A stretch of DNA of 64,000 bases from Paragordius varius (Eukaryota; Animalia; Nematomorpha). The DNA is taken from NCBI GenBank assembly GCA_964247055.1, contig OZ176052.1, forward strand, positions 1,798,001 to 1,862,000. The letters run 5' to 3'. The stretch's first letter is position 1, and the number at the start of each line of letters is the position of its first letter. The translations under genes were made by a program, and so were the position numbers. Below are positions 5,065-42,300 of this stretch, in pieces. The notes beneath the pieces were generated by a model that was not told the origin of the DNA, ran no database searches, and saw only the letters and a list, made by a program, of their open reading frames with translations.

Positions 5065-5097
<33 letters not shown>

Positions 5098-8000: not shown

Positions 8001-11000
8001 ATTTTTATCCATATTTTGGTTATATAATTTTACCAAAATACAAAAACCCTATATAGCAATTTTAAATAAAATCTTTTTTTAAATCAGCGCTCTTAACTAT
8101 TATTGATTATATATTACAAGAAACTAATTTTTATATAAATTTGGTATATTTTGAATATAATTGTGTATCTTTTCAGTTTTTTAAATTATTTTGTTTTAAA
8201 AAATTTATCAAATATTTTAGCCGAAAATTTTTACATAATTCTAGGATTTTTGGCTTTTATATATATATATATATTAAATTTATTAGTGTAATAATGTTGC
8301 ATGGATATTTGTGTTGTGATGCCATGTTAAATTTCCTTCCTTTTGTATTCCTATTGTCTGTGATTGTCTTATATGTATCAGGTATTATAAACTTTTTTTT
8401 CAAATATTTTTATTGAATTTTTCCTTTTTTTTATAATTCACTTTAAGATTTTTATTCAATAAATTTATTAAAGGCCTTTGGAAATTATAACTTTTACATT
8501 TTTTTAAAAATATCTATAAAATTGTATTTATTTAAAAAAATGGTTTATTTTGCCATTTTTTTGTAATCACCATCTTTAATTTTATGGATAAATTAATTTA
8601 CGGACTTTTTAATTAAAAGTTGTTTTACCTATTTGAATTATGAATAACCTTTGAAATGTTTATAAATCTACCAAAATATATAATCCTATTTTAATTATTT
8701 TTTTAGTTTTCGAAAAGGATGAATTCTTCGAACATAACTTAAATAAAAATGAAGTGCAAAATCATCTCTTTAATGCGGATTTTATATATTTTGCAACATT
8801 TCAGGCGCTATGTTTGGATTACATTGTACAAAAATTTAATACCGAAGGAAACGTTTTAACACAAGATGGACTGGTAATTGGTTTATAGCTTTATATAAAT
8901 TGCAATTATATTTCATATCAGTTTAAATTATACAAATACAATATATTTGTGATAGAGCTTAAAAATGTTTAAATATATATATTAACTTTTTTATATATTT
9001 TTGGTTAAAATTCTGTTTAATTTTACCAAAAATTAATTTTAATCCCTTCCCCAACTAATATACATAAAAATTAATTTATAACATTTTTTAATTAATATGC
9101 AATTACAAGTTATTTTAAAATTTAATATTTATTAAATATTAATTTTATAGTTGAAAGAATTCAAGCAAGCTTTCAAATGTGATTCATTTAACATGGTATA
9201 TACTGAATGTTGGATTCCTCAAATATTTGCCAACATTGTTAAACAACCCATTATTTCCTTCACCATGGATAATGATACCAAAAAATCTAATCTTATCAAT
9301 TTCATTAAAGGTAAATTAAAGCTTATAGAAAAAAAACCCTTTTTACCTAAAATATGTCTGAAATTTGCCATTTTTTACCGAAATACCAACGCTTGCTATT
9401 AAAAATGTGTTTTAATAGGTCTATTATATTAAAAGTTCTCATTTGTACATTAATATAACTGAAAATATGTCAGAAGGCATATGATTGATAAATATTTTAG
9501 GGAAAGAAAATTTTTTTGAACTGTTTTCACAAAAATTTATTAATGAATGCTATAATTTCAAAATTAACAGATATCCATAAATACGTATAGAAATTGGAAA
9601 AATACATAATTACTGTGAGGCTGATATTTTTAGGTTTTATCGGATATTTAAAAATATCTGGGAACATTGCTTTTTTTATCATTTCCTAAATTAGATTGCG
9701 TAAATAGCGAAAGGTTTGGTTTAAAATCAACTTCTACTGGTAATAAAGATCACGAATGTTTTTGCACAAATTTTACCCATTCATATCGAGTATTATGTCA
9801 AACAATCAATCCTAACTCACATTGCGACAACACTCTCGAAGATGGTATGTTTCAAACAATTTTAGCGGTTTTTATTAAGTATAGTCTCCAGGGGTGTCCA
9901 CAACGCGCCCCGCGGAGTTTTTGGAAATCTTTCAAATTAACACGGATTTCATAATTCGCAATAATATGGCTCAATATATCATCGTAAAATTCTAACAAAT
10001 TTTCAAAACAAGTCTTTTCAATATTAGCAACAAACTAGCAGAGCAATGGCACTTTGATTTTTTCAACAGTAGTTTTATGTTTGAAATCTAATTAAATATA
10101 TATTAATTCCCATGAATTATCGAATGCGACCCGCGCGAAGCCGTTTGTGTTGGACACCCCTGATATAGTCAATTAAATGTTTTTTTATACATGTTAAATT
10201 TGCCCTTTTATATATATATATTTATATTTTTTAATTTAATTCTAGGTCATCACGATCGAAAGAAAATTTATGCCAAATTTTTAGATCAGTTCTTTAAAAG
10301 TGCATGCGATGCTAAAACATTGGGGGGTATCCTAGTACCCAATCGTAAAAACAGCCTTAACAGTCACATCAATAATCATATTATTAAAGACAAGGAACAT
10401 GTTTTAAATATCCTCATTAATATGCTGTATTTAGAAGCGTCGGCCTTATTTCAAGAAAATTACTACAACGGAAATATTAATTCTAGAAATATATTATCAC
10501 AATCCTTCTTACCAAGGCAATCATCAGATAACTCTTATTTGATTCTTTTATTACGGAAAATTGAATCAAATTTTATGTTGGTCCAATTAATTGCACAATG
10601 TGGTAAAGCTTTACATTTTTTTAAAAAAATTGCGAATAAGTAATGTTTTAAGCAAATATATTTTGCTAAGCATGGATACAATTTATTTTTTAATTTATTC
10701 ATTTATTTTAACATTCAACATTACTTAAAAATATTGATTTTAGCCTAATATAATTATTTTTGTCACAAAAAATAAATTTTAGGTGACATATTATAAAAAA
10801 TCTCTTTTTTTCGTTTATTATTATTAGATTACATGGATCATTTATGTTATATGGGTAATATGTTTGCTACAATACTTCAACAATTTGTTCAATTTTTCTC
10901 CACCATTAATTTGTATGATATGGGGTATGAATTCAAATAATATTATATTTTCAAAAAGAGAAAACAATAGAAATATATCAAATTACAATTTTGAAAAATT

Positions 11001-14000
11001 GAATTTTATTAACTTTACTAAACTGCTCATCTACATTTATTAAAATCAGAAAAGATATTCGGTTGTTTTAAAATATTAAATGCCAATTTAATTCTTTCAA
11101 TATTCTATTATGAGTATTTTATTTTTCTTACAGCATTAATATTATATTTTTCCTTAATTTTCAAATAGATTGGATATTAATTCCGCCGCCTATCCATTTA
11201 TTTTTGATGGACAAGTGTTACTTAAAAGACTTGCTAATCGTAAACTACTCAAAAAATTTTTGTCAAAACATTACACAAAAAGTACTAAAGAGAAAGAGTT
11301 TCAATTTAAACAAAAATCTCAAGAATGCCGCTTGAAACAAACCCATGAGAATATACGAACATCTACGACGAATGGTAGAAAAACTTTTGATTTAACTATA
11401 CTGCCTATTGGTTTATACATTTTATATGGAATACAAAATACGACCAGTAAAATATTTATCTGTAAATCCATGCAAGATTCACGTTTATGGTCCCATGTTT
11501 TTAGGTTATTTTTTTTTAATTTTATCTAATTTTTTTATTTTTTTTTCTAAAAAATTAATTCTTTGATACTATACCGTTTATATTGAGCTAAATTTAAAAA
11601 TAAGGATATGCAATATTATTGCGTTAAAATTTAAATCTTTTCCCTACAATTTTTTTTTCTGTATTTTTCGTTAATTACTAACACTGGCGTTTCTAAAATA
11701 TATATATTTATTATTTATAATTTCTTGTATTTATCTGGAAAAAATTTCATGCGTAATCATATAATATAAAATTATTTTTTTGGTTTTAAGATGTAATAAT
11801 GCTATTTTTAAACATTCTTTTTCCCAATTCTTCAATAGATTTTATGGAATGATTGTTCGGATAAAAGCCTTTTTTGAAATGCCAAGTACGCATTTAGAAC
11901 CATTTGTTAAAGATGTAAGGCAAATTCTGTGCCCTCATCAAAAAAATGACGATACCAATGAAAATAATAGGTAATTTTATTATTAATAAATAGCATTTTA
12001 AATATTAGGTATGGAATTTTCAGATGAAATTTTATTTAAAAAATTGAAACAATAAAATTTTATTTTTTATCTCATATTTACAGCCATAATTTACATTGTA
12101 TAGGAACAAATTAAGAGACTTAGAATATTGGTGTCAGTTTTTATTTTAAAGACAACTTTTTACACAAAAAACCTGCTAAAAATTACAGTTTGGCATTTTA
12201 ATGGTTGCTTATTTCACTTTATAGTAAGGCAATTTGCAACACACAGTAGTGTATGGAAAAAACAACAAAATGTTGAATAAACAATTCTTTTTTCAATACG
12301 CTTTCTTTAATGTCAAATAAGCAACCATTTAAAGGCATCAACTATATATTTCATGTTTTAAGATAACTTTTATTTTTTGATATTTCCAATATTTAATCCA
12401 TATACTCACAAATCTTTGTAGAAATGGAAATAAAACTCAACCCACAAAAATAAGTGATATCAATACTTCAAATACTGATTCCACATTTTTTTATGATACA
12501 CTGTTTTCACTTATAAAGTTTGGCAATGAATGTACCCTGCAAGATTTATCCTACAAAAATTTTATGCATTGGATATATAATTTAGATTCTGTTCATGATG
12601 AATTCAAATCGAAATCATCACCTCATAGCACTAATAATAATAATAGTAATAATATAAATAAATTTCCATTTCATCTTTTCTCACCTGCGATTAATGCCCT
12701 TTTCAACCAACTTAACAAGTATTTATTTTGGATTTCGCTAAAATTTGGACAGCTAAAATTGTTTGATTGTGCTTTAATTTTAATTGGGTTGTTTTTTATT
12801 TTCTTTTATTTTGTGGTATCGAAGATAATCGTTTAAATATCGGGTATTCAATACGCGCATCTCCGAAATATTTTTACGGCCTACTCGTGTCAAAAAATAT
12901 CAAACAAAAAATTATTTTTGCTTAAACTTTTAATTGAAATATCTTTTCCCACATTTTGGCAATGAACTAACAAAAATTGATATTGAATGGTAGTTATATT
13001 TAACTTTTTGATTCGAATTTTAAATTGTAAATAATCCCGCTTATAATTTACATGGTTACATTTGTTTATATTAAAGATAACCGGATAGCTTTTTTATTTA
13101 GGAGATAAAACAAACGATATTATTGGCAATTCAATTCAGAGCTGTTTTAACATGATTTTGAATAATTGTTGTGTATAAAAATGTGTAGCATAAATAAAAT
13201 CTTATCATTATTTTCCAGTCAGTCAATTATTAAATGTTAATTTTTTCATTTTCCTTTCCTTAGAGTTCTTCAAGATCTTTATATTGGGATTGAGTTTGAA
13301 AAATTACTAATTTTGGGTCAATCACTGCATTCATATGCCTTGTTTCATATACAAGCTTACCGGGATAAATATACAATAATCAGCAGAAAGGGTATTTATT
13401 CTATAATTTTGTTTTCAATAATTATTCATTTTCATTTTTTTTTATATACCATTTACAATAAAATAAATTATGTGTTTTCGGGCTAATATAACTCATCATT
13501 AATAATAAATATATTCTTATAACATAGTTTTTTATATTTTTTCGGTATTATATTAATTTTAAACGTGATTTCATTTTTTAAAAATATTTTAAATAAAGGT
13601 AATTTTTAATCTTAAAAACATAATTTATTCGTAGGTGTATTCGAATTCTTCGTGGGTGAATTTTAATTGTTGAAGGGTGAATTTGAACTATAAATGGTAT
13701 ATAACTGCTTTATAAAGCACTTAACTACTACTAGAAACATCAAAATCAAAGCCAAATGCAGTTAATGAGAATCGTGTGCAAGGTCATTCAAAACAACCTT
13801 TAAAAATGGAAAAATATTTTGATTTATACCATATAAAATGGATCATCAGTCAAATATATGAGCTTTTACATCAAACACTAAAATCGGGGAGACCGTTGAT
13901 ACAAATCATGAATGTTTGGCAAAATTTTTATCTTAAAACGATGAAACAGGTTGGAAAGAATTTTGAGCGTTTTTTTATAAAAATAATAATAATTAAAAAT

Positions 14001-17000
14001 TATATTTACAGAATTTTTTATTATAATTTTTTAATTTCTACTGATGAAAAAAAAATTGCATTTATTAATAAATTTAATACTACTATTAAATTGTGGAAAA
14101 AATTCTAAAAAAAGATTTATATATTGATTTGACTAAATAACAAATGTACTATTTTTATATTTTATTTAACTATACTATAGATGGTATATATGGGTTGGGA
14201 GATAGGTTGGGAATACTGTAAAACTGTATTAGATATTAACCAAAGATTAATTGATGCTTTTAGTTCTACGTTTGCAGAACAGCCAGGATTTCATATAAAT
14301 CAAAAGGTAATTTTTAAAATATCGTATTGTTATTAAATGGGCGAATTCTAAAAATAAAATTCATGATTGATATGTTTTTTAGTTTTTTTGTGATTACAGT
14401 ATGCATTTTAATGGTTGCTTATTTTTTGCAACACAGTAGTGTATGGAAAAGGCAACGAAATGGTGAATAAACAATTATTTCCTTTCTTTTTTCCATATAC
14501 TCCTGTGTTGCAAATTGTTCAACTATAGTTTGAAATAAGCAACCATTAAAATGAATACTATACTGTATATGATATTTTGGCATATTTTATTGTAATATTA
14601 CTTACTTATTAGATTATGTCCATATACTATGAATTTATGATGTTGGCTTTGGATAATTCCCACATTACTTTGAATGAATCTTCTCCCCATCGCGTTGAAA
14701 GAAACAATATGTGTCGACAAAAATTTATGGCTAAGGTAGTAGGTCCTTTCATTTTTGCATTTAATTTTTTTTATTTTCTTTATAAAATAATTTTTTACAA
14801 ATATATATTTAAGATTAAGCTTATATTTTGACAAATTTTTAGCCGTTATTTATTAAAAATACCTTGGAATTCTATATAAATGTTTTTGGTCATTGGTAAC
14901 TTTAATATGTTTACATATACATTGATATATATAATTATATTATATCATAGATATTTGAACAAATTTACTCGATTATTATTATTGTCTCATCTCCGGCCCA
15001 ACCTTCAGAGTTTGAAAACAAACCATTTATACCACAGAATTATAAAACTAACAATACAGAACACAATTTAGGCTCAGGCCTAATTTCCATACTAACTTGC
15101 TTGAAATTATATGTAATTGCCTTTGTGGAAAAACACTGTAATAAACTAAATTCGTATAATTTGAAAGAAATTTTAAGCTCATCTCATAGTTATATACCTA
15201 AGGGGTATGATTTAACCGCTCATGAATGTTCAACCATACTTGTGTTAACTAAAGTATTAAATTCCCTTTCTGCCCATTTGGATGCTTCAAACTTTGGCAT
15301 TTGCAAAGAAGAAATTATAAAATGGTCTGAAAATTTAATGGATTTCCTGAGTCGATTACTGCATTATGGCTATGTCCAAAATTTTGTATTTGACAATATT
15401 CCATATCTTTATTTCGGCGACAACACTAAAGATGTGGATAGACAAGTTATTGAAAGTATATAATTTTAAAAATGAATTTTATGCAGCTTACTGTAAAACT
15501 CTCTGCGAATCCATATATGTAATTATGTTTATTGAAATGTTAAAAGAAATTATTTTTTGCATTAACATACTGATAGGGATTGTTAGTACTCATGAAGCAC
15601 TGACGCCAATATGCCATATATGGACACAGCTTTTCATAAATTTGTGCCGAAAATTATCAAATAATGTCTTACATTCGGATAACAAATCTTTAAATCACCT
15701 GCAAGAGTATGCAAATAAAATTTATTTTTTTAAATTATATTTAGACATTTTAATATAATTTTTTTAATTTTATCCATAGACTTTTAATTAACTTTCGACA
15801 AAGACGCGAACAGTACTTGAAGAATCATATAAAATCGCAATCTGCAAACAACATAGATTTTATTGCCTTTTCCACCCTAATTACTGATTACGACGATATA
15901 TTTATGGTAGTTTTTAGAACTGTGGTTTTAAATTTTTACATAAATGTTTTTTTTACATTATTTAAAAGGGCCTTATATATATATATATATATGATTTAAT
16001 TTATATTAGCCAAATATTTATACTACAAACTCACCCCCTAACGGTAAAATTGATAAAACGGAGTGTTTCAATCCAAATGCAAATTTTACCATATCGAATT
16101 CCGTCTTAAAATTTTTGGATCGTATCTTTGATTTAGCTCTAAATCAATATTATTCTCAAGCCAAAACTAAAAAACCAAAACTAAATGGTATGCATGTTAA
16201 ATATTGTTCTAAAAATATTTTATGATATAATTTTTAAATGTTCTTTAGATCATGAATCCATTTTTGAGATGATTGGGCAAGCTTTGTCACAACAAGGCAC
16301 TAACGATAATAACCAGTTATTGAATAATACATATCTCGTCAACATTTATATGGTCGCATTTACCAAACTAAATGATTGTATTATATCCGACACATTTTCA
16401 CATAATAATATGAGCATGAATAAGAATTATATTTCCCAAGGGGGTACAATATCCAAAAACGGCGAAAAAATGTATAAAAATTACATAGCAAGTCGTGTGG
16501 AAAATGTTAAAAGTTTGCTTACAATCCTAACTGATTCTATCTTGAAGATAACTGAGAAATATTTCGTAAATGAGAATAAAATACTGAATAGAGAACTTAA
16601 AAATTTACAACCAGAGATTAAGGAAGCCATCAACGTATGTTTAGGGCTAAATTCCCAATTATTAACCACATATACATTGGGTGTATGCAATGATCGGAGT
16701 TTTGCCCTTACCGCGTCTAGCATAAGTAGTTTGAGGTACTTTTTTATTTTCGTAAATTTTAATAAAAATGATTTTTTAATATTGTTAAATTTTGAAACGA
16801 CATAATTAAACCGCTTTTTGCAAAATGACATTTTGTGCATAAATACTATAGCTTTTCCGCGTCAATGTAATATTTACATTAAAAACGCTTTTTTAGATTT
16901 AATTATGTTGAAATTTATGTTTAATTCAAATAAAGTTTTATTATCAAATTTTTTGGCACATAAAAATACTTTTTATATATGGGAGGGAACTTATTTAAAA

Positions 17001-20000
17001 AATAGGTTTTTTTAGTAAAGTATCTTGAGTCGTATAGTATTCCACAAATAATTTAACCCTATAGTTACCTGTTATATTTATTCCACCATTTAGACACTAT
17101 TTATTTCAATGGTCATCATCGTTTTGTAACACTGCAATATTGTCCAACACCATTCCTGATTCTACATTTGTGTCCAATAATAAAAATAAAAGTTCCACCA
17201 ATATAATAAACATTGATAATTTTGACAAAAAACTTTTGATTGATCAAATTTTGTTGTGTCTTTCGGCTTGTCAAAACCATTTATTGCATAAATGTCAATT
17301 GATTACAATCATTTTTGAACCAGGAAATTGGAATATGAATGGGAATGAATTAAATTTTGATATACGATTGGGTATTGTAAAGCATACCACCAACAAACGA
17401 GAAATATTACCAATTAACCATCATAATAATTTTGACAATTTACCTTCTAATGATAGTAAAACAATGGTTAAAGGAGGAAATAAATGGGTTAAACGTGAAA
17501 CAAAGTTACGAATGGATATGATGAAAGAGGTGATTATACTATTATAATATTTAATTTTATATTTTTTTGAGACACCTTTAAATGTTAAAAATTAAAATCA
17601 TTCAAACAGTCAAAATTAAATTTTTTTTAAAAGACAAATATTTTTTTCTAAAAGACAAAACCATACTTTCTAAATCTTGATATTAATATAAATCATTGTT
17701 TTAAACTGCAAAGTATTAAAAAGAGATGTATTTTATTAACTAGAATTGTAATTAATTAATTTACATAGGAAAAATTAAGCTTTAAAATTGTTTTATTTTG
17801 GTCTTTATATTTTTACGTTTTGTCCCTATTTAATTACAATTTTTACTGTTCTCATAAAAAAGCTTAATTTAATGTTGATATTAAAAATCCAAAATTTTCT
17901 AATAAATAAAATTATTTTATGATGTTACATAATTAGGTATTTTATTTTGACAATGAAAACTCTGTCATAAAAAATGCTCATCTACCAGCAAATGTTACAC
18001 ATAACGATTCTCTTAAGTTGGATGAAATTATAAGTATATCCGCATCAGGCAAATACACTAATTTAAAGTATTTTAGTTTTATTATTACGTTTTATTTTAA
18101 CGTTATTTAAAACATATATTGTTGCCTCAATTCAAGAAAATAAATTATATGTATAGCGTGCTTTAACATTAAATTTTCTTTAGATTACAAAAATAATTCT
18201 AGAGATTTATGATATATAATTATATTCAATCATTTCTCCACGTATTTTATTTTTTTGCGACTCTTAGATTTACAATGTACATTGAAGAGTTTGTTAATTC
18301 TTTGCTAGGAACCTGGTTATTTACCCAATTATTGGGTGATTTAGCCTTAAAACTTTGTCAAAGTCATTACATAATAAATACGGCGCAATTTAACACTGTG
18401 CCCAGTCAAGTCAATCTTTTCATTGATCGCAAACAAGGAGGCACAACTTTAAATAAGAATATGAATATATCGAAAGGATGGAATGAAGCACCTAGATCAA
18501 ATTACGAATGTTATGATAGAAAATTATTAAAGTAAGGAATTCTTATTATAGATACGACATTTTTTAGGAAAAAAATTTAGTAATTTGCCATATTTCCCTA
18601 ATAATAATATATATTTTTTGCTTTATCTTGGTCCTAGGTAGTAAGTATTGTGAATTACAGTTTGCAATATTGTTAAAAATGACTTTTTATGGTTGAATCT
18701 TTTTTTGGTTTTCTAATTTTTTTAAAAAATACAAAATAGCAATCTGCCATGATTCTAAAATGCTATTGTGAGATTTTAGTTGTTAACTAATAAGTAACTT
18801 TAAAAATAATTTTTTGCACAAATATAGTGGAATGTAATTATCAAAACGCCGTATGTATATATATTACCTCTTATTTTTAGCTTTTTATTGCATGCGCTAA
18901 CCCAAACATACCATTTAACGTGTGCGTTTGATCGAAGACCTGGTCTCAAATTTTTACTTAAGCGTTGCTTTTATATTCATCAATCCCAAACTATATCTGT
19001 TAAAAGTAAGGACAATTTTGACAATAAAAATTCTAATCAATCCTACTCAAAGAGTAATTTGGAAAATACTGAATCAACAACTATTTTACCCAATCTATAT
19101 AGGGTTGGAAGTTTAGCATTTGCTTACTATGGATTAATTTTGTTCCATCTCTCTGTTAAAAGGTATCTTTGAATATATATATTTGAACAAAAAATATTTT
19201 TTCCAATTTAATATCAACTCAAGAAGCCATCAAAATATAAACACTCTATTTAGTTATATTGTCAAATTTTATTTAATGTCCTTATACTAATTTTATGATC
19301 ATTTATTTTTGTAAGTATAACTAAATAAATAATTAATATTTTAAATGATTTTTTAAAATAATTTGCTCTCGTTACCCTATATACTCAGAAACGATATTGA
19401 TGGTCTTACAAACGGGAACTTGAATGATGATTGCAAATTATTTTTGAGTTTTTTGGATTCTCTCCTCACATTTTATTGTGTGCTCAATAACCAAGAAATT
19501 AAGTAATTATATAAATATTCAATAATAATTTTGTTTTCACATCTATTCTTAATCAAATTTATCAAATTTATCATTACAACTTAGTGAAATCTATTATGTT
19601 TTTTTATATTTTATAAATTTTAACAATTTCTTGACGTTTTTTTACTAAAAATTAAAACGCTCGTATAATATTATCCAGCTTCTCAATAAAAAACAATTGT
19701 ATTATGATTTAAATTTAATATTACGGAAATCAAATATTTTGACATATTTATTTTATGATTGTATAACAAAATTAAATTTTTATTATAACATACTTTTTGG
19801 TATTATTTTTTAGTGACTGATTTATTTAAATTTTATTGTTGATATTTTTTGTATGGAAAATAAAATAAATAAAATTCGAAAAGTGATTTTTTACCATATG
19901 TCAGTTAAGTTTTCCATAAAAATTATCAAATTTTAGCTAATATTTATATGCATATATAGGAAACCAACTTTACAGAAAAACACTATGAATAAAAATAAAC

Positions 20001-20760
20001 GCTTTAGTAGTTGTACCACACCACTGACATTTGCCAATCTTTTTTCAAACAGTCTCGCCCCTTCAAATAAAAATATTACATTGTCAAATATAACTACACG
20101 TGGAATAAAATCTTCAATTTCCACCCATAAAAGATTGGATAAAAATCAAAAATCCATAATACGGAAACAAAAAAGCCTTAATTTGGAACAAGAAACAAGC
20201 CCTGTCGTAAACATTCAACATTTTGATAAATTTATTATGCAACACCATCCTCGACAAATTGAAAGTCATTTGGATTCTTTGCAAAAGGTTATTTGACACA
20301 AAAAATACTCTTTGAGATTATTTTTGTTAGTATATTAATTAGTATATATTTTAAATTTCTTTTTATATAGAATTATAGGTTGAAATTTTCTAATTTGCAA
20401 ATTTTTAAAAGGCTTTTTGAAAAGTTAATTTTTATTTTTCAAATAGTTTATTGAAAACACCGTTCATCTCGCTTTTTTAAAATTTTTTTTACTGAAACTG
20501 AAAAAACCATCACTTCTGAAGACATTTTTAATCCATAACCTATTTAACTTTTGTTGGTTAGATTTTACATTTTTTATGATTAGGACAATGAAATGCACAA
20601 ATGTATATGGATGAAAATTACGTTTGCTTTCCTGGAACTTTTAGTTAAGGAGAAAATACATTTATCAGACATGCTTGTTAATCAATTAAGCCTCGTGTTT
20701 CAACAATTCACTCATATCTCTGATTTCTCACATTATTTCAAAATGATTATTGTCAATTAA
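211..20760 (+). CDS. ARFGEF3: ARFGEF3/BIG3-like (brefeldin A-inhibited GEF 3) copy A; exons 3-39 of 39, 5'-truncated by the window edge
   Basis: Manually threaded GT-AG exons with consistent phases: 211-289, 393-581, 1211-1282, 1606-1862, 2248-2361, 2665-2829, 3356-3501, 3941-4283, 4821-5002, 5677-5826, 6445-6747, 7058-7230, 7699-7858, 8707-8873, 9151-9310, 9695-9844, 10246-10602, 10828-10924, 11169-11504, 11839-11970, 12422-12718, 13264-13391, 13735-13949, 14181-14306, 14613-14735, 14951-15455, 15577-15706, 15780-15906, 16010-16187, 16249-16735, 17094-17529, 17937-18067, 18268-18531, 18881-19162, 19389-19502, 19960-20287, 20584-20760 (TAA). Peptides match remembered human BIG3 motifs in the same order: TETLWRDVCPAL~TDLIWKNLCPAL, EIDLAIIQFSSQF~EVDTALQNFASTF, FNADFIYFA~MNADSLYTA, LWSHVFR~CWPHVFR, GRPLIQIMNVW~ARPLLHVMRCW, EQPGFHIN~EPPHFHFN, FDRRPGLKFLLKR..PNLYR~FDTSPGLKCLLKK..ANLYR. 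Confidence 0.85.
1343..1586. mobile_element. MITE family P3 copy in intron 5
   Basis: TA|TACCGTTTGC..AAATTCACCCTAAAA ... TTTTAGGGTGAAT..TTTGAACTGTAAATGGTA|TA. Confidence 0.7.
9889..10162. mobile_element. hAT-Charlie-type MITE in ARFGEF3 intron 18 (copy A)
   Basis: TIR CAGGGGTGTCCA ... TGGACACCCCTG; flanking TATAGTC on both sides (degraded TSD). Shared with copy B, so it predates the duplication. Confidence 0.85.
12186..12344. mobile_element. MITE family P1 copy in intron 22
   Basis: cagtttggcattttaatggttgcttatttcac ... aaataagcaaccatttaaaggcatc; shared with 50244-50440. Confidence 0.7.
13447..13699. mobile_element. MITE family P3 copy in intron 24
   Basis: TA|TACCATTTACA ... GGGTGAATTTGAACTATAAATGGTA|TA. 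Confidence 0.7.
14397..14560. mobile_element. MITE family P1 copy in intron 26 (empty site of the copy-B RTE insertion)
   Basis: cagtatgcattttaatggttgctt ... aagcaaccattaaaatgaatacta. Confidence 0.75.
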
Positions 20761-23216: not shown

Positions 23217-23283
23217 AAAATTTATTTACAATATTGTAATAATAACAAAATCATTAACTAAATACATATATTAAAAACATTAT
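23217..23283 (-). terminator. Putative polyadenylation / 3' UTR regulatory block of the minus-strand gene
   Basis: 67 bp identical to 62792-62858. The minus strand reads ..UUUUUAAU..UGUAUUUA..UGUAAAUAAA, with AAUAAA at 23226-23221, UGUAAAUA at 23230-23223 and UUUUUAAU at 23277-23270. Confidence 0.5.
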
Positions 23284-23289
23284 AATAAA

Positions 23290-25200
23290 AGATGGGGTAA
23301 AGCATTTTGTTTGAAGGGTTGGTTAATGTAAGTTGTGTGAAAATATAAATCAGAGATGTGTTGAGTTTGACAAGTTATATGTAAGGTGAGGTGTGATGAT
23401 GAATGTTGGGTGATTTTGTAGGAAGAAAGAGTTTAGAGATGTGTTGATGTAATGTAAGAGAATATGGGAATATCAATTAATAAAATAAAAAAATATTTTT
23501 TATATAAAAAATGAAAATGTTTAAAAAATAGGAGAGGTGATGATGTAATGAGTGTGTGAGACGTAAGGTTAGGTGTAATGGTAAATGGTAAGGTGATTTT
23601 GTAAAGATAGGGGTGTAATGTATTGGAATATAAAGTAATATTTTTATATAAAAACATCCAAAAATGAGATATGATATAAGTTTGAGGATGTAATTGTAAG
23701 GTGAGATGTGATGATAATTGTTAGGTATATTTTAAGGATATGGGAATATAAAATAAAAATATATTCATATATATGTTAAAAAGTATCCAAAAGTGTTCAG
23801 TTTGACAATGTAAATGTAAGGTGAGGTGTGATGTGTTAGGTATATCGTAAGGATAAGGGAATTTGAAGTAAAAATATATTCATATATAATAAAAAGTATC
23901 CAAAAATGAGATTTGATAAATGAGGATGCAAGATGAGGTGGGATGGTAAATGTTAGGAGTTTTTGTAAAGATAGGGATCTAATGTAAGGGAATGTTGGAA
24001 TATAAAGTAAGGGAATATAAAATAAATAAATTTTTATATAAATTTAAAAGCATCCAAAATGAGATTTGATCAGTTTGAGGATATGTAAGTAAGGTGATGT
24101 GTAATGATAAATGTTAGATATATCGTAAGCATATGGGAATATAAAGTAAAAATATATTTTTATGTTAAAAAGTATCCAAACGTGTTCAGTTGAGGATGTA
24201 TATGTATGGTGAGGTGTGGTTTGATGGTAAATGGTAGGTGATTTTGTAAGGATATGGGAATGTAAAGTAAAAATATATTAATATATAATAAAAAGTATTC
24301 AAAAATGAGATTTTTGATGATGTATTTGTAAGGTGAGGTGTGATGTAATTGTAAATGGTAGGTGATTTTGTAAAGATAGGTATGTAATGTAGGAGAATAT
24401 GGGAATAAAATAAATAAAATTAAAAAATATTAATCAAATATAAAGATATGGTGAAAGAGTAAATTGGAGAGAGGTGATGTGATATGTGGGTGAATGAGAT
24501 GTAAGGTGAGGTGATTTCGTAAGATGTGTTGATGTAATATAAGGTAATATGGGAATAAAATTAAATCAAAATAAAAAATAAATCTATTTATGGTATATAA
24601 AGAATATAGTATCCAAAAAATCATGGATAGATGTGATGAGTTTGTTATATGTAAGAGGTAAGATGAGGTGAGATGGTGGTAAGAGATGTATGTTGATGTA
24701 GTGTAAGGGAATATAAATCAAAGAGAATAAAAATATGTGATGAATGGTGAGTTTGAAGATGTTTATGTAAGGTAGAGAGGTGTGATGATTAATGTTAAGT
24801 GATTTTGTAAGGATAGAGAATGGAGATGTTTGATGTAAATTAAGAGAATATATTTTAAAATAAAAAAAATAATTTAAATATAAAATAAAAGATAGCGGTT
24901 CAAAAAAGGATGAGAGTGATGATGTGTTAAGGTGAATGAGGTATGATGAATATAAATCTTGGGTGATTTTAGAAGGATAGAGAATGGAAGAAATGTATGT
25001 TAAGGTAGGATGGGTATAAATAAAAATAATGTCAAAAGTAGGACATGTGATGTGTGTGGGTGTGTGTATGTGTTAGGTGAGATGAGTTGAGGTTTGATGT
25101 AAAGGAATGTATTTCGTAGAATAAGAATGAGAATAAAAATATGAATATATGGAATGTAAAACTATAATATATTATATATATAAATGATGATACATAAAAT
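23290..25200 (-). repeat. Strand-asymmetric degenerate tandem array (about 13 units of 110-180 bp), nearly G-free on the minus strand; inferred 3' UTR of the minus-strand gene
   Basis: Plus-strand lines carry only about 0-4 C per 60 nt but many G. Recurring modules are gtaaggtgaggtgtgatg, taaatgttagg, gattttgtaaggatatgggaat and aaaagtatccaaaaatgagatttg. The array starts immediately after the stop at 25251. Confidence 0.85.
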
Positions 25201-25250
25201 ATATATAATGTGTGTTTGATATTTGAATTCATTAAACACACCAACCAACG

Positions 25251-28200
25251 TCATACACGGGTCTCCAAATAAAAAAGCCCTAAACATAAAAAAATAAAAA
25301 AATTTAAATTATATTGTTAATGTAAAAGTGTTATTTAAAACTTACTGTATGTTTCTCGAATAATACAATCAGTCATCACAGGTTCATAATCGCATGTACA
25401 ACCCTTGCATTCCAACAAACCTATTCCTGGTAAGCCTGAATCTGGAGACGGTTCCTCGCAAGGTGAAGGGGTCCATGTAAAATACTGAGGTTCGTCATTA
25501 AATCTTACTGTTTTTTTCGGAACAGTTTTTTCTACATTTAATTAAAGATGTAGAAAGATTATAAAATTGCTTTTTGCATTGATCTCGTTATTGTAAAAAA
25601 TGTTTCGAAATATTCATTTTACCGTTTGATTCAGGCGAAGTACAATCTTCATCGCATGAATTCTCGCTTTCTATCTGATTGATTTCTGACCAACTAGGTT
25701 CTGGATAAAACAGTTCTCCGACAGGGGAAGTCGGAGTCCAACGGAAATATTGAACGTCTTCATTGAAAACCACTCTTTTTGGGATATTTGGTTCTAGTTA
25801 AATAAATTTTTATTTTATGGGTATTATTAAAGGGACTACCCAAAAATATTTAACTATGTTTAGTTTTATTTTAAGTTTTAATAAAAATCATAAAATAGTT
25901 TTTTACCATTTTTGCATCCATTTCGGCCCTTAATGTTGGATTTCTTTTGAATCGCATCAGGCTTACCAGGTGGACAAACAACTAATGCATAGTAAAATTG
26001 ATTTTGTAATATTAATACCTAAATAATTTTTTAAATAAATTCAGAACATTAGAGCATATTGATCTCACATTTAAAAATTTAACAGTTAATAAATGCATGT
26101 TCGTCAGATCTGATACACAAATAAGTATTGACACAAAATTTTATTTTAAAATACACCTAAATTTTGGTTTTATGAGTATAATTTCTGTATATTATAATTT
26201 TCAAGATAGTGCTTTATGCCTAAGGTGACCAGATTTTTTGAAGGAAAAAGCGGGACAAATCTGATAAGGGAGGGGGTCATTGGGGAGTACAACCAAAAAT
26301 TTTTATACAAAAAATTTATTGTAATATTTATTTATTTTTAACACAAATACATTATTAATATATAAAAATTTGTACCTTACAGGTTGTTTGTACCTTATTC
26401 AATAAATTTACATGTGCACGAACAAAGGGTGAAGTGATTGTAATATTCTAGAAAAAAATAATAAAGACGAAATCATCACAAAGTGCGCTGGGTGATGCAA
26501 GCGGCACAAAAAATATTTTTAACAATTTAGCGAATAATTTTAATCAAAACATTATTGGCAGATACACAACGCTATTCAAACAGCTACTGATTTGTTACCC
26601 CTGGATGTGGGAAATATAGATGTTAACTTTGATATTAAAGAACTGCTGGTAAGCTCTTTAGCCAGCAATTGAAATATTTATAAAAATGTGATCTCCAAGA
26701 ATCCCATTTTTTATCACAGGACAAAGGTCAAAATTCCAAGTCAAAAAAGGTTAGAAAATAATTTTATACCATTACCTAATCTCAATATTATAAAGCATCC
26801 AGAAAAACAAGGCTCAATGAATAGCCAAAATATAAAAATGTTTTATACAAACAGAAAAGACAAGACGGTACACAATGACACTTTTTTATGAAGTCTCATT
26901 ATTAAATAAATATATTGAATGAAAACTTATATTATGGACAACAGAAAAAAATACGTAGGATAGAAATGGTTAAAATAATCATTTTTAAACAAATTACGTT
27001 CCATACAATATTATTTTAATTGTAGAATTTGCATTATCACCTGAACCACTGCTATTGAACGCGTTTTTCCACATTAAGTAAGGACACGGAATTAAATTTA
27101 AATGTTGAATAAAAGCCATTTTATGTGTTAAAATATAATTTGACAAATTATGAAGACTTATACAATATTTTACGTGATTTTGTTTATTTTTTTACACAAA
27201 AACTTTAAAGAAAATATTTTATTCTTTGGTATATTTTTTGTTTGAGAATGCGTTTTAGCAGATTGTCATCATTTTTTAAAATATTGTAGAAGTCTTCACA
27301 AGAATTTGTCAAATTATATTTGACAGATAAAACGGCCTTTATTTCAACATTTAGATTTGATTTTTCCGATGTCCACACCTGATTTACTGTGGAAAAAACG
27401 CGCTCAGTAGCAGCGTTGGTTCCAGGTAAAGATAGTGCGAATTCCACAATTTTTAAAATATTATTGTATGTAATATAGTTGGCTTCAAAATGATGAAATA
27501 TTTCCAACCATTTCTTTTCTACTGTATATTTTTCTTTTGTCCATAATTTAAGTTTTTCATTATTAATATATCTTTTAAATAATGATACTACAGAAAAAAG
27601 ATCATTTTCTGAAAGATTACTTTTTGATAATTTTTGGGAGCAGATATAATCAAATGATTTTTGAACATCGCACCAATTAAATTCTGATTTTAATGTTATC
27701 CAATGAAAATGATCAATTTCATTGAATTGCGTCGTCCAGTCTTCCTAATCTTTACAGTTTGTATAAAACATTTTTATATGGTACAGGATATCTTGGCGAT
27801 TTATTAAGCCTTGTTTTTCTAAATTATTTATTATATTGCGGATGGTTAATGGTTTAAATTATTTTCTAACCGTTCTTGACATTGGAATTTTAGGTTACTA
27901 ACTTCATTGGCTACTTCGATTTTCGAAATTTTGTCACCTTCTATAAATTTAATAACATTTTGAAAGAGAGAAGCTTGATTATGTAAGAATTCTAACCATA
28001 TTTTTGAACAATCACTTTCAAAAAACTTTTTTAAAGTTGTAGGACATTTGTCCTGTGATAATAAAAAAGATTTTAAAGGATCATACATTTTTAAAATTCT
28101 TTCGATAGCTGGCATAAAAGCTAACCAACGAGTTTTACAATATCCAAGCATTTTTGATATTGAACTTCTGCATTTTCACAGAATTCTTTAAGCGTTTCAA

Positions 28201-29816
28201 CACTACCGTGTATATATAAAAATAGGAATATATTTTAACAACTACATTTTCCACATCTAGCGGTAACAAATCAGCAGATGTTTGAATAGTGTTGTGTATT
28301 ATATGCGCTGCACACCCAACGCCAATAATGTTTTGATTAAGATTATCTGTTAATTTATGAAGAATATTTTTTTGTTCCTCTCCTTGCTTTTCCACCAAAG
28401 TTCATATTGGTGTTGTCAGCGCAATATACGATAATTATGTATTTTAAATTATTTTTTTGCATTATTGAAGTAAATATTATTTCGGAATTTTCACCGGGTA
28501 GGGAAATTAAATCTAAAATTTTAATTTTTACTCCGGTTTCTGAATCAAAATATCTCATCAAAGTGGGAAATAATTTTGTTTCATGGTGATTTGATGCATC
28601 AGAGTATAGCGATATGGAATTAATTTTCAGCAAATTTTTTTGTATTTCAGAAAATACATGGGCGAAAGGACATTCACACAATGGCTTCAGCCTTTGTACG
28701 GGCACATGTAAATTTTTTATGGAATAACGTGCGAATAACCTGTGAGGTACAGTCCATAGATCTAAAGGAGTGATTGTGATTAAGGGCGTGAAAAGATAAC
28801 ACGCCCTCAGCTAGTGCCAAATTCTTTTCTTCCTCTCCAAAAGCGGTTTTTCAAAAAAATCGCTCATTTTGTAAGATGATGCCGCCATATCTAAACATTT
28901 TTTATGTTTATGTGTTTCCATATGCTCTGTAATATCATGCTTGCCGCCATGTGCTAGGGTGAATTCCCCCTCGCATATATGACATTTAATAAATTATTCA
29001 TTCTTCGTTTTTTTAATAAAAGGAAAATCCTTCATTAATTCATCGTTAAATTTACAACCTCTTTTTGTGCTCATATTTATAAACTACTATTAGTGTAATA
29101 AATATTATATTACCTTAATTTTCTGTGATAAACGTGTAAGGTACCGATTTGTGGTATCAATTTGTCTTTTAAGCTACCGATTTGTGGTATTAATTTGGCT
29201 TTTTAATAATGTTGGCAAGTAATAAAACTAAAATATTAGTATAATAAATATTATATTACCTTAATTTTGTGAAATAAACGTGTAAGGTACCGATTTGTGG
29301 TATCGATTTGTCTTTTAATCTAGAGATTTGTGGTATTAACTTGGCTTTTTGATAATAATGACAGTAGTAACAGGAAGTATAGTGTATATTCACATGATAT
29401 AAATTCAAAAAAAATAAATATTTTTAATTTAAAATAAAAAATTTTAATTTAAAATTGACTAGATTTTAAAGATATTTAATGATAAAAAATTTAAACGGAC
29501 AAAAAAAATTTATTTGTATTAAAAAAAATTTTTTTTTATATAATCGTGAAAAAGCGGGACATTTAAAAACGTAGCAGGAAGCGGGACAAAGTGTGAAAAA
29601 GCGGGACTGTCCCGCCAAAAGCGGGACGTCTGGTCACCTTATTTATGCCCTAGTGTCTTAAAAAAAGGAACTCATCTCAAATTTATTTGAAAAAAAAATG
29701 TTTTTTTATAAAATTTTACATCATATAAATAAAATATAAATTTTTACCAACTAAGGCATCCTTCTCTTTCATCTTCCCAAAACAAGAAAACAGACGATTC
29801 CACCACTTTTTCAAAC
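25251..29816 (-). CDS. Small uncharacterised protein, putative PP1-targeting subunit (2x RVxF modules, C-terminal PDZ ligand); 5'-incomplete
   Basis: Minus-strand exons 29816-29748, 25981-25907, 25793-25623, 25531-25346, 25279-25251 (TGA), all with canonical AG/GT and all introns in phase 1. They join into one ORF: ..LKKWWNRLFSCFGKMKEKDALVVVCPPGKPDAIQKKSNIKGRNGCKNEPNIPKRVVFNEDVQYFRWTPTSPVGELFYPEPSWSEINQIESENSCDEDCTSPESNEKTVPKKTVRFNDEPQYFTWTPSPCEEPSPDSGLPGIGLLECKGCTCDYEPVMTDCIIRETYRLFYLETRV*. The exons stand out as GC-richer islands. Start exon not located. Confidence 0.72.
26430..27172 (+). pseudogene. Decayed, deletion-riddled inverted copy of the hAT transposase 3' half, inside the same element
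   Basis: Plus-strand blocks align with the reverse complement of 27275-28480, e.g. aatcaaaacattattggc, ctgatttgttacc.ct.gatgtgg, atcacaggacaaa, ggttagaaaataattt, aaaatgttttatacaaac, aaatataatttgacaaatt..gaagactt.tacaatatttt. Confidence 0.85.
27205..29074 (-). pseudogene. Frameshifted/nonsense-disrupted hAT transposase
   Basis: ATG at 29074 (MSTKRGCKFNDEL..), BED-like CHICE..H..H finger, SFRSMDCTSQVIR..FTCARTKAEA, SLYSDASNH (catalytic D region), GCAAHIIHN, KTRW, LSLPGTNAATERVFS (hAT dimerisation motif). These are split across several frames with internal stops. Confidence 0.93.
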
Positions 29817-36355: not shown

Positions 36356-39300
36356 AAAATATATTTTTTTGATCATATAATGAAACGGTTAAAATTTTAT
36401 TAAGTTTTACAGTAAATATTGAAATTATACGGACAAAATGTTAAAATATAAAGACAAATATTTTTTTCTTAAAGACAACCATACTTTTTTAACCTTAATT
36501 TTTTTTAAATATAACTCATTGTTTTAAACTACAAAATATAAAATAGAAACGTATATTGGTAGCACAATCAATTATGTAGTTTACGATTATGATTAAATAT
36601 TTTATATATCAAAAATTAAGGTTATAAAAAGTATGTTTGTCTTTTCGATAAAATTATTTGTCTTTCTATTTTTACATTTTTTCCGCATACAGTTTTTACT
36701 GTATCTTTTTAAAAGATAGAGCTATTAGTGATTTTTATTAATTTCCTTACACACCTATACAAATTTTTGTTAATATAGATTTATAAATATTGATTATATA
36801 TGGTAAATTTTATGATAAATTAATGACAGTAGAATAATTTTCCTCTCCTAATTATTGTCATTTCTGTGGGTTCTGAATAGTTTTAAATATATATATTTAA
36901 CAAAGTTTAACTATGATCTTATTAATGTGGAAATTTAAAGCTATATTTTTTTGTTAATTAACATTTTTAGCTCAATCATTATTATGTTTTAAAAATACGA
37001 TAGATTTTCAAACAAGTCGTCCACAAATTGGAAATTACGATTTTATCAGGTATACTTTTTTTACAGTCTTTAAAGCATATTTTTTATTATGGAATCCTAT
37101 TAGAAGAAAAAATTGGTGAATTATGATTTAAGCAAAAATAAAATTTTATATGTCTGAATACACTGACAATAAAAATTTTCTCCAACAAGAAATGAATAAC
37201 TGTTTAAGTCATTAATATTTTTTCTGCATTTGATAATGATTTATTCCCTTTTTCCAATACAATTAAATACCTCTTAATATACTTTATTTTGGCTACTTAT
37301 ACGAATTATATATATAAACAGTTAAACTATTTTAAAATAAAATCAAGTTTAGATAATTATCTGTCTATATTAATAATATAGCCGATAAATGATGTATATA
37401 TAGACTGTAAATTTAGCCTGGGAATTAAATAGATTTGGTTAAATTATTGAAAAAAATTTTTTTACATACAATCAGATATCAAAAGTTTTTCGCTTTTAAA
37501 ACTTATTTTTTATTCACGAAAGGCAGGATTTAAAAACAATTTAAAAGTATGTCAGTTCAATTCAATCACAATATTTTTTTTATACATATCTATCATTAGA
37601 TTAAAGTACATTGAAATTTTGGATTTGATGGTCAAGAGTGGGGATATTCCTTTAGCTATTACTTTGACTGGTTTTCAAGTAGTTATTAACATTACAATTT
37701 TTAATTTCCAATAATTTTTTTCAATAAAAGACAAATTATAAACAAAAATATATTATTTCCTAGATTTTAGTAAAAGAGGGCGAAACGGAGAGCGAAAAAA
37801 AGTTTTTTGTCCACCAAAAAATAGATGGCGTAAAAAATAATGGACAGCAAAGTTGTCCTCCCGATTTCGCAAACAACATTTTGATGAGTTTGTCTTTTCC
37901 TCTAACGCATGGTTTAGTTGAAGATATAACGGATAAATTTCGAATAATACAGGTTTTTTTTATTATAAGTACCCATTGCTTTTAAATAAGGATAGTCTTA
38001 AACAAAATCTAAATTATTATTATTTCCATAAAATTATGATTAATAATCAATTTTTTGTTATTCAAACATAACATATTATTTTATTTTTTTATTGTAACAA
38101 ATTTTGATTGAAAATATGATGTTTTAATTTTTTTCTATCGCTTTATAATATTTAAGATTATAGGAAAATTTTATTATTCTCATATAAGATGTTTAGTTTA
38201 AAAGTGCTGTTTTTTACGAAAGCCTAGCATAAGAGAATGTCATTACAAAGCTGTCCATTCTATTTACTTTTTCTAATTTTACTTTCAATAATAATATTAA
38301 TAAATATTTGGATATATAGTGTAATTTATATCAAAATAAAATCATTATATCTAAAAATGGAAATATGATAGGATATTTGAGCATTCATTGGAATATATTT
38401 TCGATTTATATATATATCTATTGTATAGGGCTTATTTTGCGCTTTCGATATATATGAATATAATTTATATATAAATGCAGGATACCTTAGATGTTTTATT
38501 GTATTTATTAATATTTTCTGTTAAAATAAATCATTTTATATTTTTGTCATGTTAGCTTATCCATAATATAGCCACACTTTATCCTCACCATTTTACACAT
38601 CCTGGCCAATTTATCAAAATTTATAAGGTAAATAAATCTTATTTTTAATTTTATAGAAATAATATTTTTGAAAATAAAATATTTTTAATAAACTGTGGGT
38701 TCATAAAAAATGTTCTAACTTGAAAGGAAAATTAGTCGACAATAAAAATTTTAAATGCCAAAGATGTATATCAGGGAAACCAAACATCCCTAAATCAAGG
38801 GAGTTTAGTATCGAAGATTGTAGGTTCGAAATCGTCAACGATTTCACCTATTTAGGTAATATCAGTAATAATAATGGGGACCCTCAAACAACCATATCAC
38901 ATAGAATCAAACTCGGCTGGGCAAAATTTAACCAACTCAAATATGTATTGACACATAAAGACATAACCGTAAAAAATAAAATTAAAATGTATAAAGTGGG
39001 TGTCCGGCCTACCCTTACCTACGCCAGCGAAACCTGGGCAATCACAAAAACATTAGAATCGAGATTGAAAAGAACGGAAGATAAAATGATAAAATATATG
39101 ATGATAAATCCTACCATTGAACTAGAACCAATAACAGCTTTTATCAGAACAAATAGATTTCGGTATTTTGCATAGACAGATCCAGTTGAGACTCACCTGC
39201 AAAGGAAATTCTTGATTTACAGATTCCTGCGTCCAACCGTAAAGGGAGGCCTAAAACAACTTGGACTCAAATCATAGAACAAGACTTTAAATTCCTGAAC

Positions 39301-42300
39301 ATACCTCGAAACGCAACAAATGATAGAGACATATACCGTAAATTAATCCATGGAATCCCAATAACTGGGCCAAACCAATAATACCTAAACCATTTGCAAA
39401 TCAAATTCACCCTAAAGATAAATTATTGGGCTCATTAATAAGAAATACATTTTTATGGCATAGATTATTATTTTTTCAGTATTATATATTTATTATACGT
39501 AATTTCATTTTTTTAAAATATAAAAAAATAAATGCAATTTTTAATCTTAAAAAACACATAATTTATCTTAGGGTGAATATGAATTGTTTAAGGGTAAATT
39601 TGAACTGTAAATGGTATATATTTTAAATTTTTTAGCTGTTATTGCAAACGTACGAAACGGTGACCCACGAAACGCAACTTACAAAACGCATTAGAATTAA
39701 TATTTTTCAAATGTTTCAAACTTACATTCAATATCATCAATCGGAAATTAATTCTTTTTCTAGTGAAACCATCACCCCTGATCAAATTAATGATAAAAAT
39801 TTGTATTCACACCTAGAAATAATGGCAAATATTGATAAACTCATTCTTTACGTATCGGATGATTGTAAATTTTATAATACCAAGTTTGTCGTTTTTATGG
39901 TTTTGTTTTCAATCTTTTAATTTATTTCCTATAGAGAGATTATGTCAAATATGAAACAATTACAATAAAATTCAAGAATATAAATAAAAGCTAAATTATT
40001 TTTTTAAAATTAAACCATATTTTTTAAATCCATAATTTTATCTTACTATTTTACCTATATCATTATAATTGTGGTGCATAAATTTAATTTCTTGCCAATT
40101 TAGATCTTTCTTGCTTTATTTTCAAACCCCAATATATATAAAAATTAAGGTTACAATGAAGTTTTTTTTATAAATTTAATTTTTGACATATTTTTATCCA
40201 TATTTTTTTGAAAAAAGCATTATATACATCTATAGGTCAAATTCAGCTCTCTGCTGCGTTTGTGAAGCTTTTAATGGTATACTTACGGTTTTAATGGCTA
40301 CGAAAAAAAATAATTATATCTATACGTCAAATGTTTTAACGGAAACTCTATGGTAAAAATTATTTTTTATTCCTCACAAAAAATAAAATATATAGATTTA
40401 AAAAATATAATCAATTTGAACGCTAAATTGTACTCTTAAAATATATTTAAAAACCAACTCTCTACTACTTATGTTGATTTCCTTTGATTAATAAACATTT
40501 TAATACCCTTCTATAAAGTATAACTTATTCATTTTGGAATTAATAATCTCATGTATAAAATAATCGTGAAATATTTTTATTTCATTTATTTTCAATGTAA
40601 AAAAAGTATTATATATGTTTTGTTAGGAGAGACGTTTGCCCAGCTCTAGCAAATCTTTATAATTTACCCAATTATTATATTATGATGAATGGCAAAAATA
40701 AAGGATATTCCACCAATATCCCCTCAAGTGATCAAGCTTATTCTGTTCAATATAAGTGTCGGAATACTGATGATGATGGTGACACTAAAAGGTTTATTTT
40801 TATTGTTATACCAATTTATTCGTAAATTTGGGTTTTCTTTAAGATAAGTTCTTTATGAATAGAAGTTGGTTATAAAAATATAATGATAATTTTTTGAAAT
40901 ACCCAGTTCTTTTTAGATTAAGTAAACTAAAATTTAATAACCTACTGTTCATAATAATTTTATATCAAATTAAATTATACTATATCTAACATTGGCAAAA
41001 TGAAATTTTGACAAAAATTACATTAAATGATGAAATATACGGACAAAACGTATAAACCAAATATTTTTATTTTCAAACCCTGTTTTTTTCGAAATAAACT
41101 ATTTATTTACATTTTAAATATAATTGATGTTAACAATGAGTTATTTTAAAAAATTAAGGTTTAAAAAGTAGGGTTTTAGGGTGTCTTTTGAAAAATATTT
41201 GTCTTTTAGTTTTTAGTGTCTGTATAATTTCATTTATAATATATTTTTTATTTTCTTTTATTTTAGAAATGAGAAACCCATGGTCTGTTGGAATGGGGCA
41301 GCTATTTCAATCCCTAAAAGTCCATTATTCCTTAGGCCAGATTATTATTATTCTATCAATCAATTATTGTATCACATTTGTCTTTACATTGGGCACACTA
41401 AAGGTTAATTAATATTTCTATTAAAATATGTAATTTTACAGATTTTGGTATTAGACACGAATTTTTATATGTGTTGAGTATTTGATATTAACGTTTTCAC
41501 TTTTCTTTGTAAAAAATAAGTTTTTTTATCAGTTTTTGTTTTTGCACACTAAACTCCGCTTGAAATGTTTTTTAACGTAAATTGAAAATTTTTTACAATA
41601 TATTTTTTTACTAGGTTTTTCCAATTGACAAGTCTATATTTACATTATGCTTATATATGAAAAACTTTTTATTTAGTTAAGATTTCCCATTTAGCATTTT
41701 TATAACGAACATATATATATATATATATATATATATGATACTAATATATCAAATTTTAAAATACGTTTTTCTATATTGTGTGAAAATTAGGAATTTAACC
41801 AGTTTTATTGATTATTAGGACAAAATAAAAAGGGTGGAAACATTACTGGTGGGGCCCTCAGTTTAATTTGGCAATCCTTGATGCAATCCGCTCTATGTGC
41901 ACATGCTAATTATTTCAATTCAACTCTATTACCCAATAATGTTAATGTTAATGATTCAAATATAGTCTGCAAAGGTTTTAAGTTATTCATTGAGCAAACA
42001 GTATGCAATTTAATTGAACCACAAACTTTATACACTATTTTAACTATACATCATCAACATGAGAGTTTCATGGATCAAAAAATTGAAATTTCGAGTAAAA
42101 AAGAATGTTGGTGGATGTATGTTATGACAAATGGTATCTATGATATGGATATGATACAAATGTAATTAATTTAAAGCTTTTTATAACTTTTATTAATTTT
42201 GTGATGTTGGTTAAATCACTTTTGGTGAACTAACTGCAAAGGCTAGAGTTTTTCTGATATTTTACAAAAACATTTACCCTGCAAGAAGTTTTTTTACTGA

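Follow-up and report, generated by a model that had tools for sequence, protein, structure and literature searches.

The window analysed here, a 64,000-nucleotide stretch of Paragordius varius contig OZ176052.1 (positions 1,798,001 to 1,862,000), very likely carries at 25251-29816 on its minus strand a real spliced gene that lists of open reading frames (ORFs) overlook. We interpret it as a small, lineage-restricted, multi-copy gene of an AT-rich animal genome, with at least five coding exons, whose product is most likely intrinsically disordered and would act via short linear motifs. Two of its exons each carry a copy of a duplicated module, K-[RT]-V-[VR]-F-N-[ED]-[DE]-x-Q-Y-F-x-W-T-P, which is best read as an RVxF plus PhiPhi docking site for the catalytic subunit of protein phosphatase 1 (PP1), with the second copy the probable strong site and the first a weaker site or a degenerate version of it. 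On this reading the product would serve as a PP1 targeting subunit, inhibitor or substrate-adaptor. What a preliminary description had observed in this DNA is confirmed by our analysis, and its interpretation is supported in part: the product is a candidate new PP1 partner from an undescribed, amplified family. That the gene is real and that its product interacts with PP1, taken together, we place somewhat short of an even chance.

The five minus-strand exons have the positions, phases and borders that the preliminary description gave them (Table 1) and join into one frame, a split first codon followed by 175 more; the phases were verified from the exon lengths and from the translation of every exon singly. 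Three of the donors read GTAAAA and one reads GTAAGT, while all acceptors are AT- or T-rich tracts with an AG end. As was also claimed, the joined frame ends in ETRV*, and the ORF listing holds the gene only in pieces, one of 61 amino acids at 25588-25773 and one of 32 amino acids at 29716-29814. The ETRV end requires splicing of the 66-nt intron 4; the unspliced end would be ...ETYSKF*. Because every exon runs from phase 1 to phase 1, the frame would survive the skipping of any one of exons B, C and D. Exon B also holds an in-frame alternative phase-1 donor, CCTG/GTAAGC (GGTAAG at 25965-25967; exon end 25967), the use of which would keep the frame and drop the basic segment KPDAIQKKSNIKGRNGCKN. 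Within intron 2, the 82 nt at 25817-25898 are skipped or replaced in contigs of one run each from two species, an indel polymorphism; the corresponding joint, 25816>25899, was considered as splicing and rejected, being an indel variant that lies wholly within the intron.

Whether such a chain of exons could arise by accident was addressed in two ways. In 40 first-order Markov windows of 64 kb, a chain was counted when it held at least 461 coding nt and three GTAA...AG introns within 800 nt, and chance chains of this kind occurred in 11 of the 40 windows, so that the size of the ORF chain is not significant. This outcome ran against expectation, and the contrast in guanine-plus-cytosine (GC) content between exons and introns was therefore used instead. 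The exons range singly from 0.39 to 0.41 GC and the introns from 0.12 to 0.22 (exons B-E pooled, 0.406 versus 0.174). The exon-minus-intron difference of 0.23 is threefold the largest value among 44 chance chains, which spread from -0.07 to +0.07 (largest 0.073), a case overstated somewhat because the simulated windows are compositionally uniform. Even so, chance would not readily produce four GC-rich patches whose ends all coincide exactly with usable splice sites.

Table 1. Features of the minus-strand gene and of the transposon in its first intron, in window coordinates, listed in the direction of the gene.
Feature	Position (strand)	Length	Phase	Sequence and remarks
Exon A	29748..29816 (-)	69 nt	1 to 1	LKKWWNRLFSCFGKMKEKDALV; amphipathic, basic-aromatic, one Cys; GC 0.39, flanks 0.20-0.23
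Intron 1	25982..29747 (-)	3766 nt		GTAAAA...TTAG
hAT transposon	26221..29641 (-)	3421 bp		within intron 1; decayed, non-autonomous or dead
Exon B	25907..25981 (-)	75 nt	1 to 1	VCPPGKPDAIQKKSNIKGRNGCKN; basic linker
Exon C	25623..25793 (-)	171 nt	1 to 1	PNIPKRVVFNEDVQYFRWTPTSP...; module 1, then acidic Ser/Cys-containing tail SEINQIESENSCDEDCTSPESN; GC 0.41, adjoining introns 0.17-0.22
Module 1	25723..25779 (-)			KRVVFNEDVQYFRWTPTSP; loose RVxF only, YF at +6/+7, TP/SP pair at end
Exon D	25346..25531 (-)	186 nt	1 to 1	KTVPKKTVRFNDEPQYFTWTPSP...CKGCTCDYEP...; module 2, Pro/Ser-rich linker, Cys cluster
Module 2	25461..25517 (-)			KKTVRFNDEPQYFTWTPSP; stringent RVxF, YF at +6/+7, TP/SP pair at end
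Cys cluster of exon D	25365..25409 (-)			CKGCTCDYEPVMTDC
Exon E and stop	25251..25279 (-)	29 nt	1 to stop	(R)LFYLETRV*; ETRV at 25254-25265; donor ACA/GTAAGT, acceptor with long T-tract

The two homologous modules that had been noticed, each in an exon of its own, are borne out by a BLASTP alignment (E 1e-6). When they are aligned without gaps on the Phe of the core, 10 of 21 residues are identical, and six of the nine identical residues that have degenerate codons differ in codon. Such silent differences at kept residues imply a duplication old enough for synonymous drift to have taken place while the peptide was retained, and the codon divergence suggests that the peptide has been under selection. 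The split codon with which the exon opens (G/AA, Glu) is identical in the two module exons, and in both the module starts 4-5 codons in, at an equal offset; this arrangement fits an origin of the two modules by tandem exon duplication.

Two forms of the RVxF consensus are relevant here, a loose one, [RK]x0-1[VI]{P}[FW] (Wakula et al., quoted in PMC4794898), which is present in about 25% of all proteins (PMC4794898), and a stringent one, [KR][KR][ACHKMNQRSTV]V[CHKNQRST][FW] (PMC4794898, after Meiselbach 2006 and Hendrickx 2009). Both modules match the loose form (RVVF and KTVRF), and the window's open stretches in all six frames, 67,377 residues in total, contain a single stringent match, KKTVRF of module 2. 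In both modules basic residues precede the V-x-F core and acidic residues follow it, and a YF pair stands at +6/+7 from the Phe, the PhiPhi pair being defined by a spacing of 5-8 residues after RVxF. Residues retained by both copies include V, F, YF and W, and the context and aromatic pair of both match the sites of PNUTS, spinophilin and PPP1R15. The claim of RVxF and PhiPhi docking stands best for module 2, which combines the stringent fit with YF at +6/+7, and less well for module 1, which fits the loose form only; the term "bivalent" in the preliminary description leans on this weak first module and is not supported. That at least module 2 binds the PP1 catalytic subunit we put at about an even chance.

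A number of results pull in the other direction. Loose RVxF matches occur by chance 0.84 times per 176 amino acids in the open six-frame stretches of the window, and 0.43 times together with a hydrophobic pair; because the loose form is so common in this AT-rich DNA and in proteins generally, a match to it is nearly worthless. Module 1 (PKRVVF) fails the stringent form, and RVxF-like strings, even good ones, are not always PP1 binders. Searches for relatives were run exon by exon, and hmmscan of every exon against Pfam, up to E 10, returned neither PP1c_bdg nor any other family. In favour of PP1, the nearest language-model neighbours of both module exons in the ESM-Atlas are small viral clusters of PF10488, PP1c_bdg, with scores of 0.82-0.84, which is a lead only, and one third of shuffled proteins reach scores in this range below 0.9; since the two exons share the motif, the result counts as one observation.

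These points leave room for a gene that is real and a module that is not a PP1 site. It could be a motif for another partner, such as a proline-directed kinase, or Pin1 or a WW domain at W-T-P-[ST]-P, or it could serve a lineage-specific interaction, with the likeness to RVxF a by-product of Lys-rich, AT-biased coding. Such a reading would accommodate the invariant core of the repeat, which exceeds RVxF (F-N, Q-Y-F, W-T-P), as well as the abundance of loose matches, the failure of module 1 in the stringent form and the lack of any profile-based link to a PP1 regulator in Pfam. It accounts less well for module 2, which fits the stringent form in full, is flanked by basic and acidic residues and has its aromatic pair where PhiPhi is usually spaced, for the retention of V and F in both modules, and for the Atlas lead, which for both exons points to PP1c_bdg. 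On balance we consider it less likely than PP1 docking, which we keep as the preferred reading. Other short motifs were rejected by eye, namely SILK (SNIK is not [GS]IL[KR]), B56 LxxIxE, LIR and NPxY. A single-sequence AlphaFold2 model of exon D has a mean predicted local distance difference test score of 47.6 and no confident fold, which agrees with disorder but does not prove it, such models being often poor.

As the preliminary description held, the family is not recognisable: Pfam gave nothing, and the exhaustive HMMER scan of 1.84 billion protein representatives, which covered exon D only, gave a single spurious match. That match, P0001, is a bacterial protein of 2321 amino acids with some 20 near-identical repeats and a gliding-type C-terminus, and its E-value is a sum over the repeats. 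Neither exon D nor exon C gave any match in word searches, in which a length filter leaves out full-length kin. Matches to sequences in the PDB, to CNPase at E 0.01 (in the linker) and to D-amino-acid oxidase at E 1.3, are weak and at the level of chance. The genome's own paralogues are absent from the results, so those collections probably do not include its proteins. The blank searches thus mark the family as undescribed and say nothing of a restriction to a single species.

The gene model is incomplete at its 5' end. An AG acceptor, 8 nt past an in-frame TAA, precedes exon A, which is not the first exon; the position of this acceptor leaves either an upstream exon with the ATG or a start at an internal Met (K-M-KEKD; GAAGATGA). 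The in-frame ATG inside exon A carries an A at -3; by our own arithmetic, the 14 open codons before this Met have a chance of about 0.27 in such DNA, and with an internal start LKKWWNRLFSCFGK would belong to the 5' untranslated region (UTR). A scan of the upstream DNA for exons running from an ATG to a phase-1 GT gave many candidates and no single one that could be selected. The better ones lie in GC islands: 31001-30968, which encodes MRNGERKANGK, has the donor AAG/GTTTTA and has TATAAAA just upstream, and 31661-31604, with the donor ATG/GTAACA.

That the start codon was not located is one of the arguments for a locus with no functional coding gene, be it a decaying pseudogene of an amplified family, a passenger of the 38-kb segmental duplication described below, or a non-coding transcript with fortuitous frames. 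The sequencing runs examined lend no support to expression. The stretch occurs in DNA-like runs, in contigs that span introns and flanks alike, with no intron-skipping joints at the predicted sites, and small RNA-like runs of the same species contain next to none of its words. In our own reading of the contig table, the variants of exon C in other contigs are mostly non-synonymous, and constraint outside the modules looks weak. To this can be added the chance occurrence of ORF chains of such length, the lack of a homologue in very large protein collections and the 3.4-kb transposon inside intron 1. An intronic transposon, however, does not disable a gene, and a dead locus is opposed by five intact frames, good splice sites, an exon-intron GC contrast far outside chance and a repeat retained at the protein level despite synonymous divergence. 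We regard the absence of a functional coding gene as distinctly improbable, and proceed from a real gene that is presumably expressed.

Beyond docking, the preliminary description had tethered the product to a membrane through the segment LKKWWNRLFSCFG of exon A and anchored it to a PDZ complex through ETRV. The first claim finds no support, as the segment may be 5' UTR and its amphipathicity fits other readings equally: the 14-mer has a hydrophobic moment of 0.68, reached by 0.6% of shuffles, and it would suit membrane binding and may equally suit calmodulin or other partners. Nor does the second, ETRV-COOH being a fit to a low-information motif, the class I PDZ ligand form X-[ST]-X-hydrophobic-COOH, into which a few percent of random C-termini also fall by our rough estimate. 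A role of the Cys cluster in metal binding, acylation or contact with the PP1 active site is speculation. Most improbable of all, in our estimate, is the full proposal of a tandemly amplified, lineage-specific family of disordered, exon-duplicated two-site scaffolds that would hold two PP1 molecules at once, sit at membranes and PDZ complexes by means of an amphipathic N-terminal helix with a palmitoylated Cys and the ETRV end, and switch through phosphorylation of the TP/SP sites: the helical moment of exon A, with the Cys on its apolar side, the fit of ETRV to X-[ST]-X-V and the presence of two modules are in its favour, and it is opposed by the low information of every one of its motifs, by an N-terminal segment that is perhaps not translated, by the weakness of module 1 and by V-x-F cores only about 62 residues apart.

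Intron 1 owes its length of 3.77 kb solely to the insertion of a hAT transposon. The copy has 13-bp terminal inverted repeats, TAAGGTGACCAGA, and an 8-bp target-site duplication, GGCATAAA, at 29642-29649 and 26213-26220, and it retains a remnant of the dimerisation domain PF05699, Dimer_Tnp_hAT (E 1e-4, above the gathering score), so that all three features that mark a hAT element are present. Its ends and the target duplication are intact, and its reading frames are broken. GTCCCGC subterminal repeats are visible near both ends. In DNA runs from two species the summed contig depth of the element is about 100 times that of its flanks, which identifies a high-copy family. If the element and a single copy of its target-site duplication are subtracted, intron 1 would shrink to 337 nt and the gene, as far as it is known, to about 1.1 kb.

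The exons themselves have a summed contig depth several-fold above that of the upstream flank, again in DNA runs from two species; summed contig depth is not equal to copy number, and the excess fits a multi-copy family. The window contains a tandem duplication, of 29-24667 and 37404-64000, with about 85% identity and a unit of about 37-39.6 kb; that the DNA around the small gene is duplicated in this way counts in favour of a real gene. Each unit holds a large multi-exon gene on the plus strand (ORF pieces within 1612-20296 and 39642-59933), in which Pfam returned no family above threshold for 14 ORFs. The small gene sits just beyond the point at which the end of the window cuts the second unit, which leads us to expect a sister copy some few hundred bases past the window; within the window, tblastn with each exon detected no paralogue.

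Directly after the stop codon, 23221-25250 on the minus strand consists of about 2 kb of G-poor degenerate repeats, with units of about 120-270 nt by self-BLAST. The first minus-strand AATAAA past the stop is at 23221-23226, in a window where this hexamer occurs about once per 290 nt per strand, and the region may be a long 3' UTR. Elsewhere, a 262-amino-acid open frame at 52898-53686 starts with a PHD finger (Pfam, E 3e-5), and by eye its tail resembles that of a reverse transcriptase from a retrotransposon. At 38689-39387 there is a partial copy with 98% identity, which makes this a recently active element inserted at both places. Rfam and tRNA scans of the window returned nothing.

The specificity of PP1 comes from its partners, which number in the hundreds, are unrelated and mostly disordered, and have only short docking motifs in common; how such regulators come into being can be learnt from new partners specific to a lineage. 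Were binding to be shown, the present gene would represent a clean case of a PP1 partner made when an exon with a docking module was duplicated and the gene then amplified in tandem. Were the full scaffold true as well, evolution would have invented a new PP1 targeting subunit independently, and the expansion in copies would hint at fast-evolving reproductive or host-related roles. For now its weight is modest, that of a well-supported gene model with a plausible predicted function, and it offers a practical example of a gene wholly missed by ORF lists and protein databases.

The nearest parallel is the class of PP1 partners with an RVxF-PhiPhi-R-W string, comprising PNUTS/PPP1R10, spinophilin and neurabin/PPP1R9, PPP1R15A/B and Phactr (PMC12185105), with which the modules share a basic-V-x-F core, acidic residues, an aromatic or hydrophobic pair 6-7 residues on and a Trp close behind. 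The chain here is probably disordered, as in that group, whereas it differs in having no homology beyond the motif, in carrying two modules in tandem and in lacking a PDZ, actin-binding or TFIIS domain. The residues after YF differ as well: module 1 continues directly with R and W and module 2 with T and W, a spacing unlike that of PNUTS and spinophilin. In PNUTS the Arg and Trp lie at least some 8 residues beyond the PhiPhi pair, and given this difference the modules probably do not occupy the R and W slots as PNUTS does.

A second parallel is the domain PF10488 of PPP1R15 (GADD34/CReP) and of viral ICP34.5/DP71L, the start of which, K-V-R-F-S-E-x-V-x-V-H...W, resembles KRVVFNEDVQYFRW; the N-terminus of GADD34 also has a membrane-binding amphipathic region. 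The two differ in that Pfam gave no match here even at E 10 and in that the C-terminal part that recruits eIF2alpha, a ...W...A.DR.RF..RI stretch, is absent from the exon translations. Judged by its translated exons, the protein is not a PF10488 member and would work at most like the first dozen residues of that domain. The site of Repo-Man (CDCA2) and Ki-67, K-R-V-R-F-G-E-D-L...V-F...T-P, resembles K-R-V-V-F-N-E-D-V-Q-Y-F-R-W-T-P of module 1 in its RVxF, hydrophobic pair and following T-P site, and the T-P site of Repo-Man is under the control of a mitotic kinase. Repo-Man and Ki-67 are not homologous to the present protein and differ from it in being large, in being nuclear and in having one site only. 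Finally, TIMAP/MYPT3, with its CAAX box, and GM/PPP1R3A, with its transmembrane tail, are comparable as PP1 regulators that a lipid or hydrophobic anchor keeps at a membrane, but they combine ankyrin repeats or a CBM21 domain with prenylation or a transmembrane helix, where the gene described here would have an amphipathic segment of uncertain coding status.

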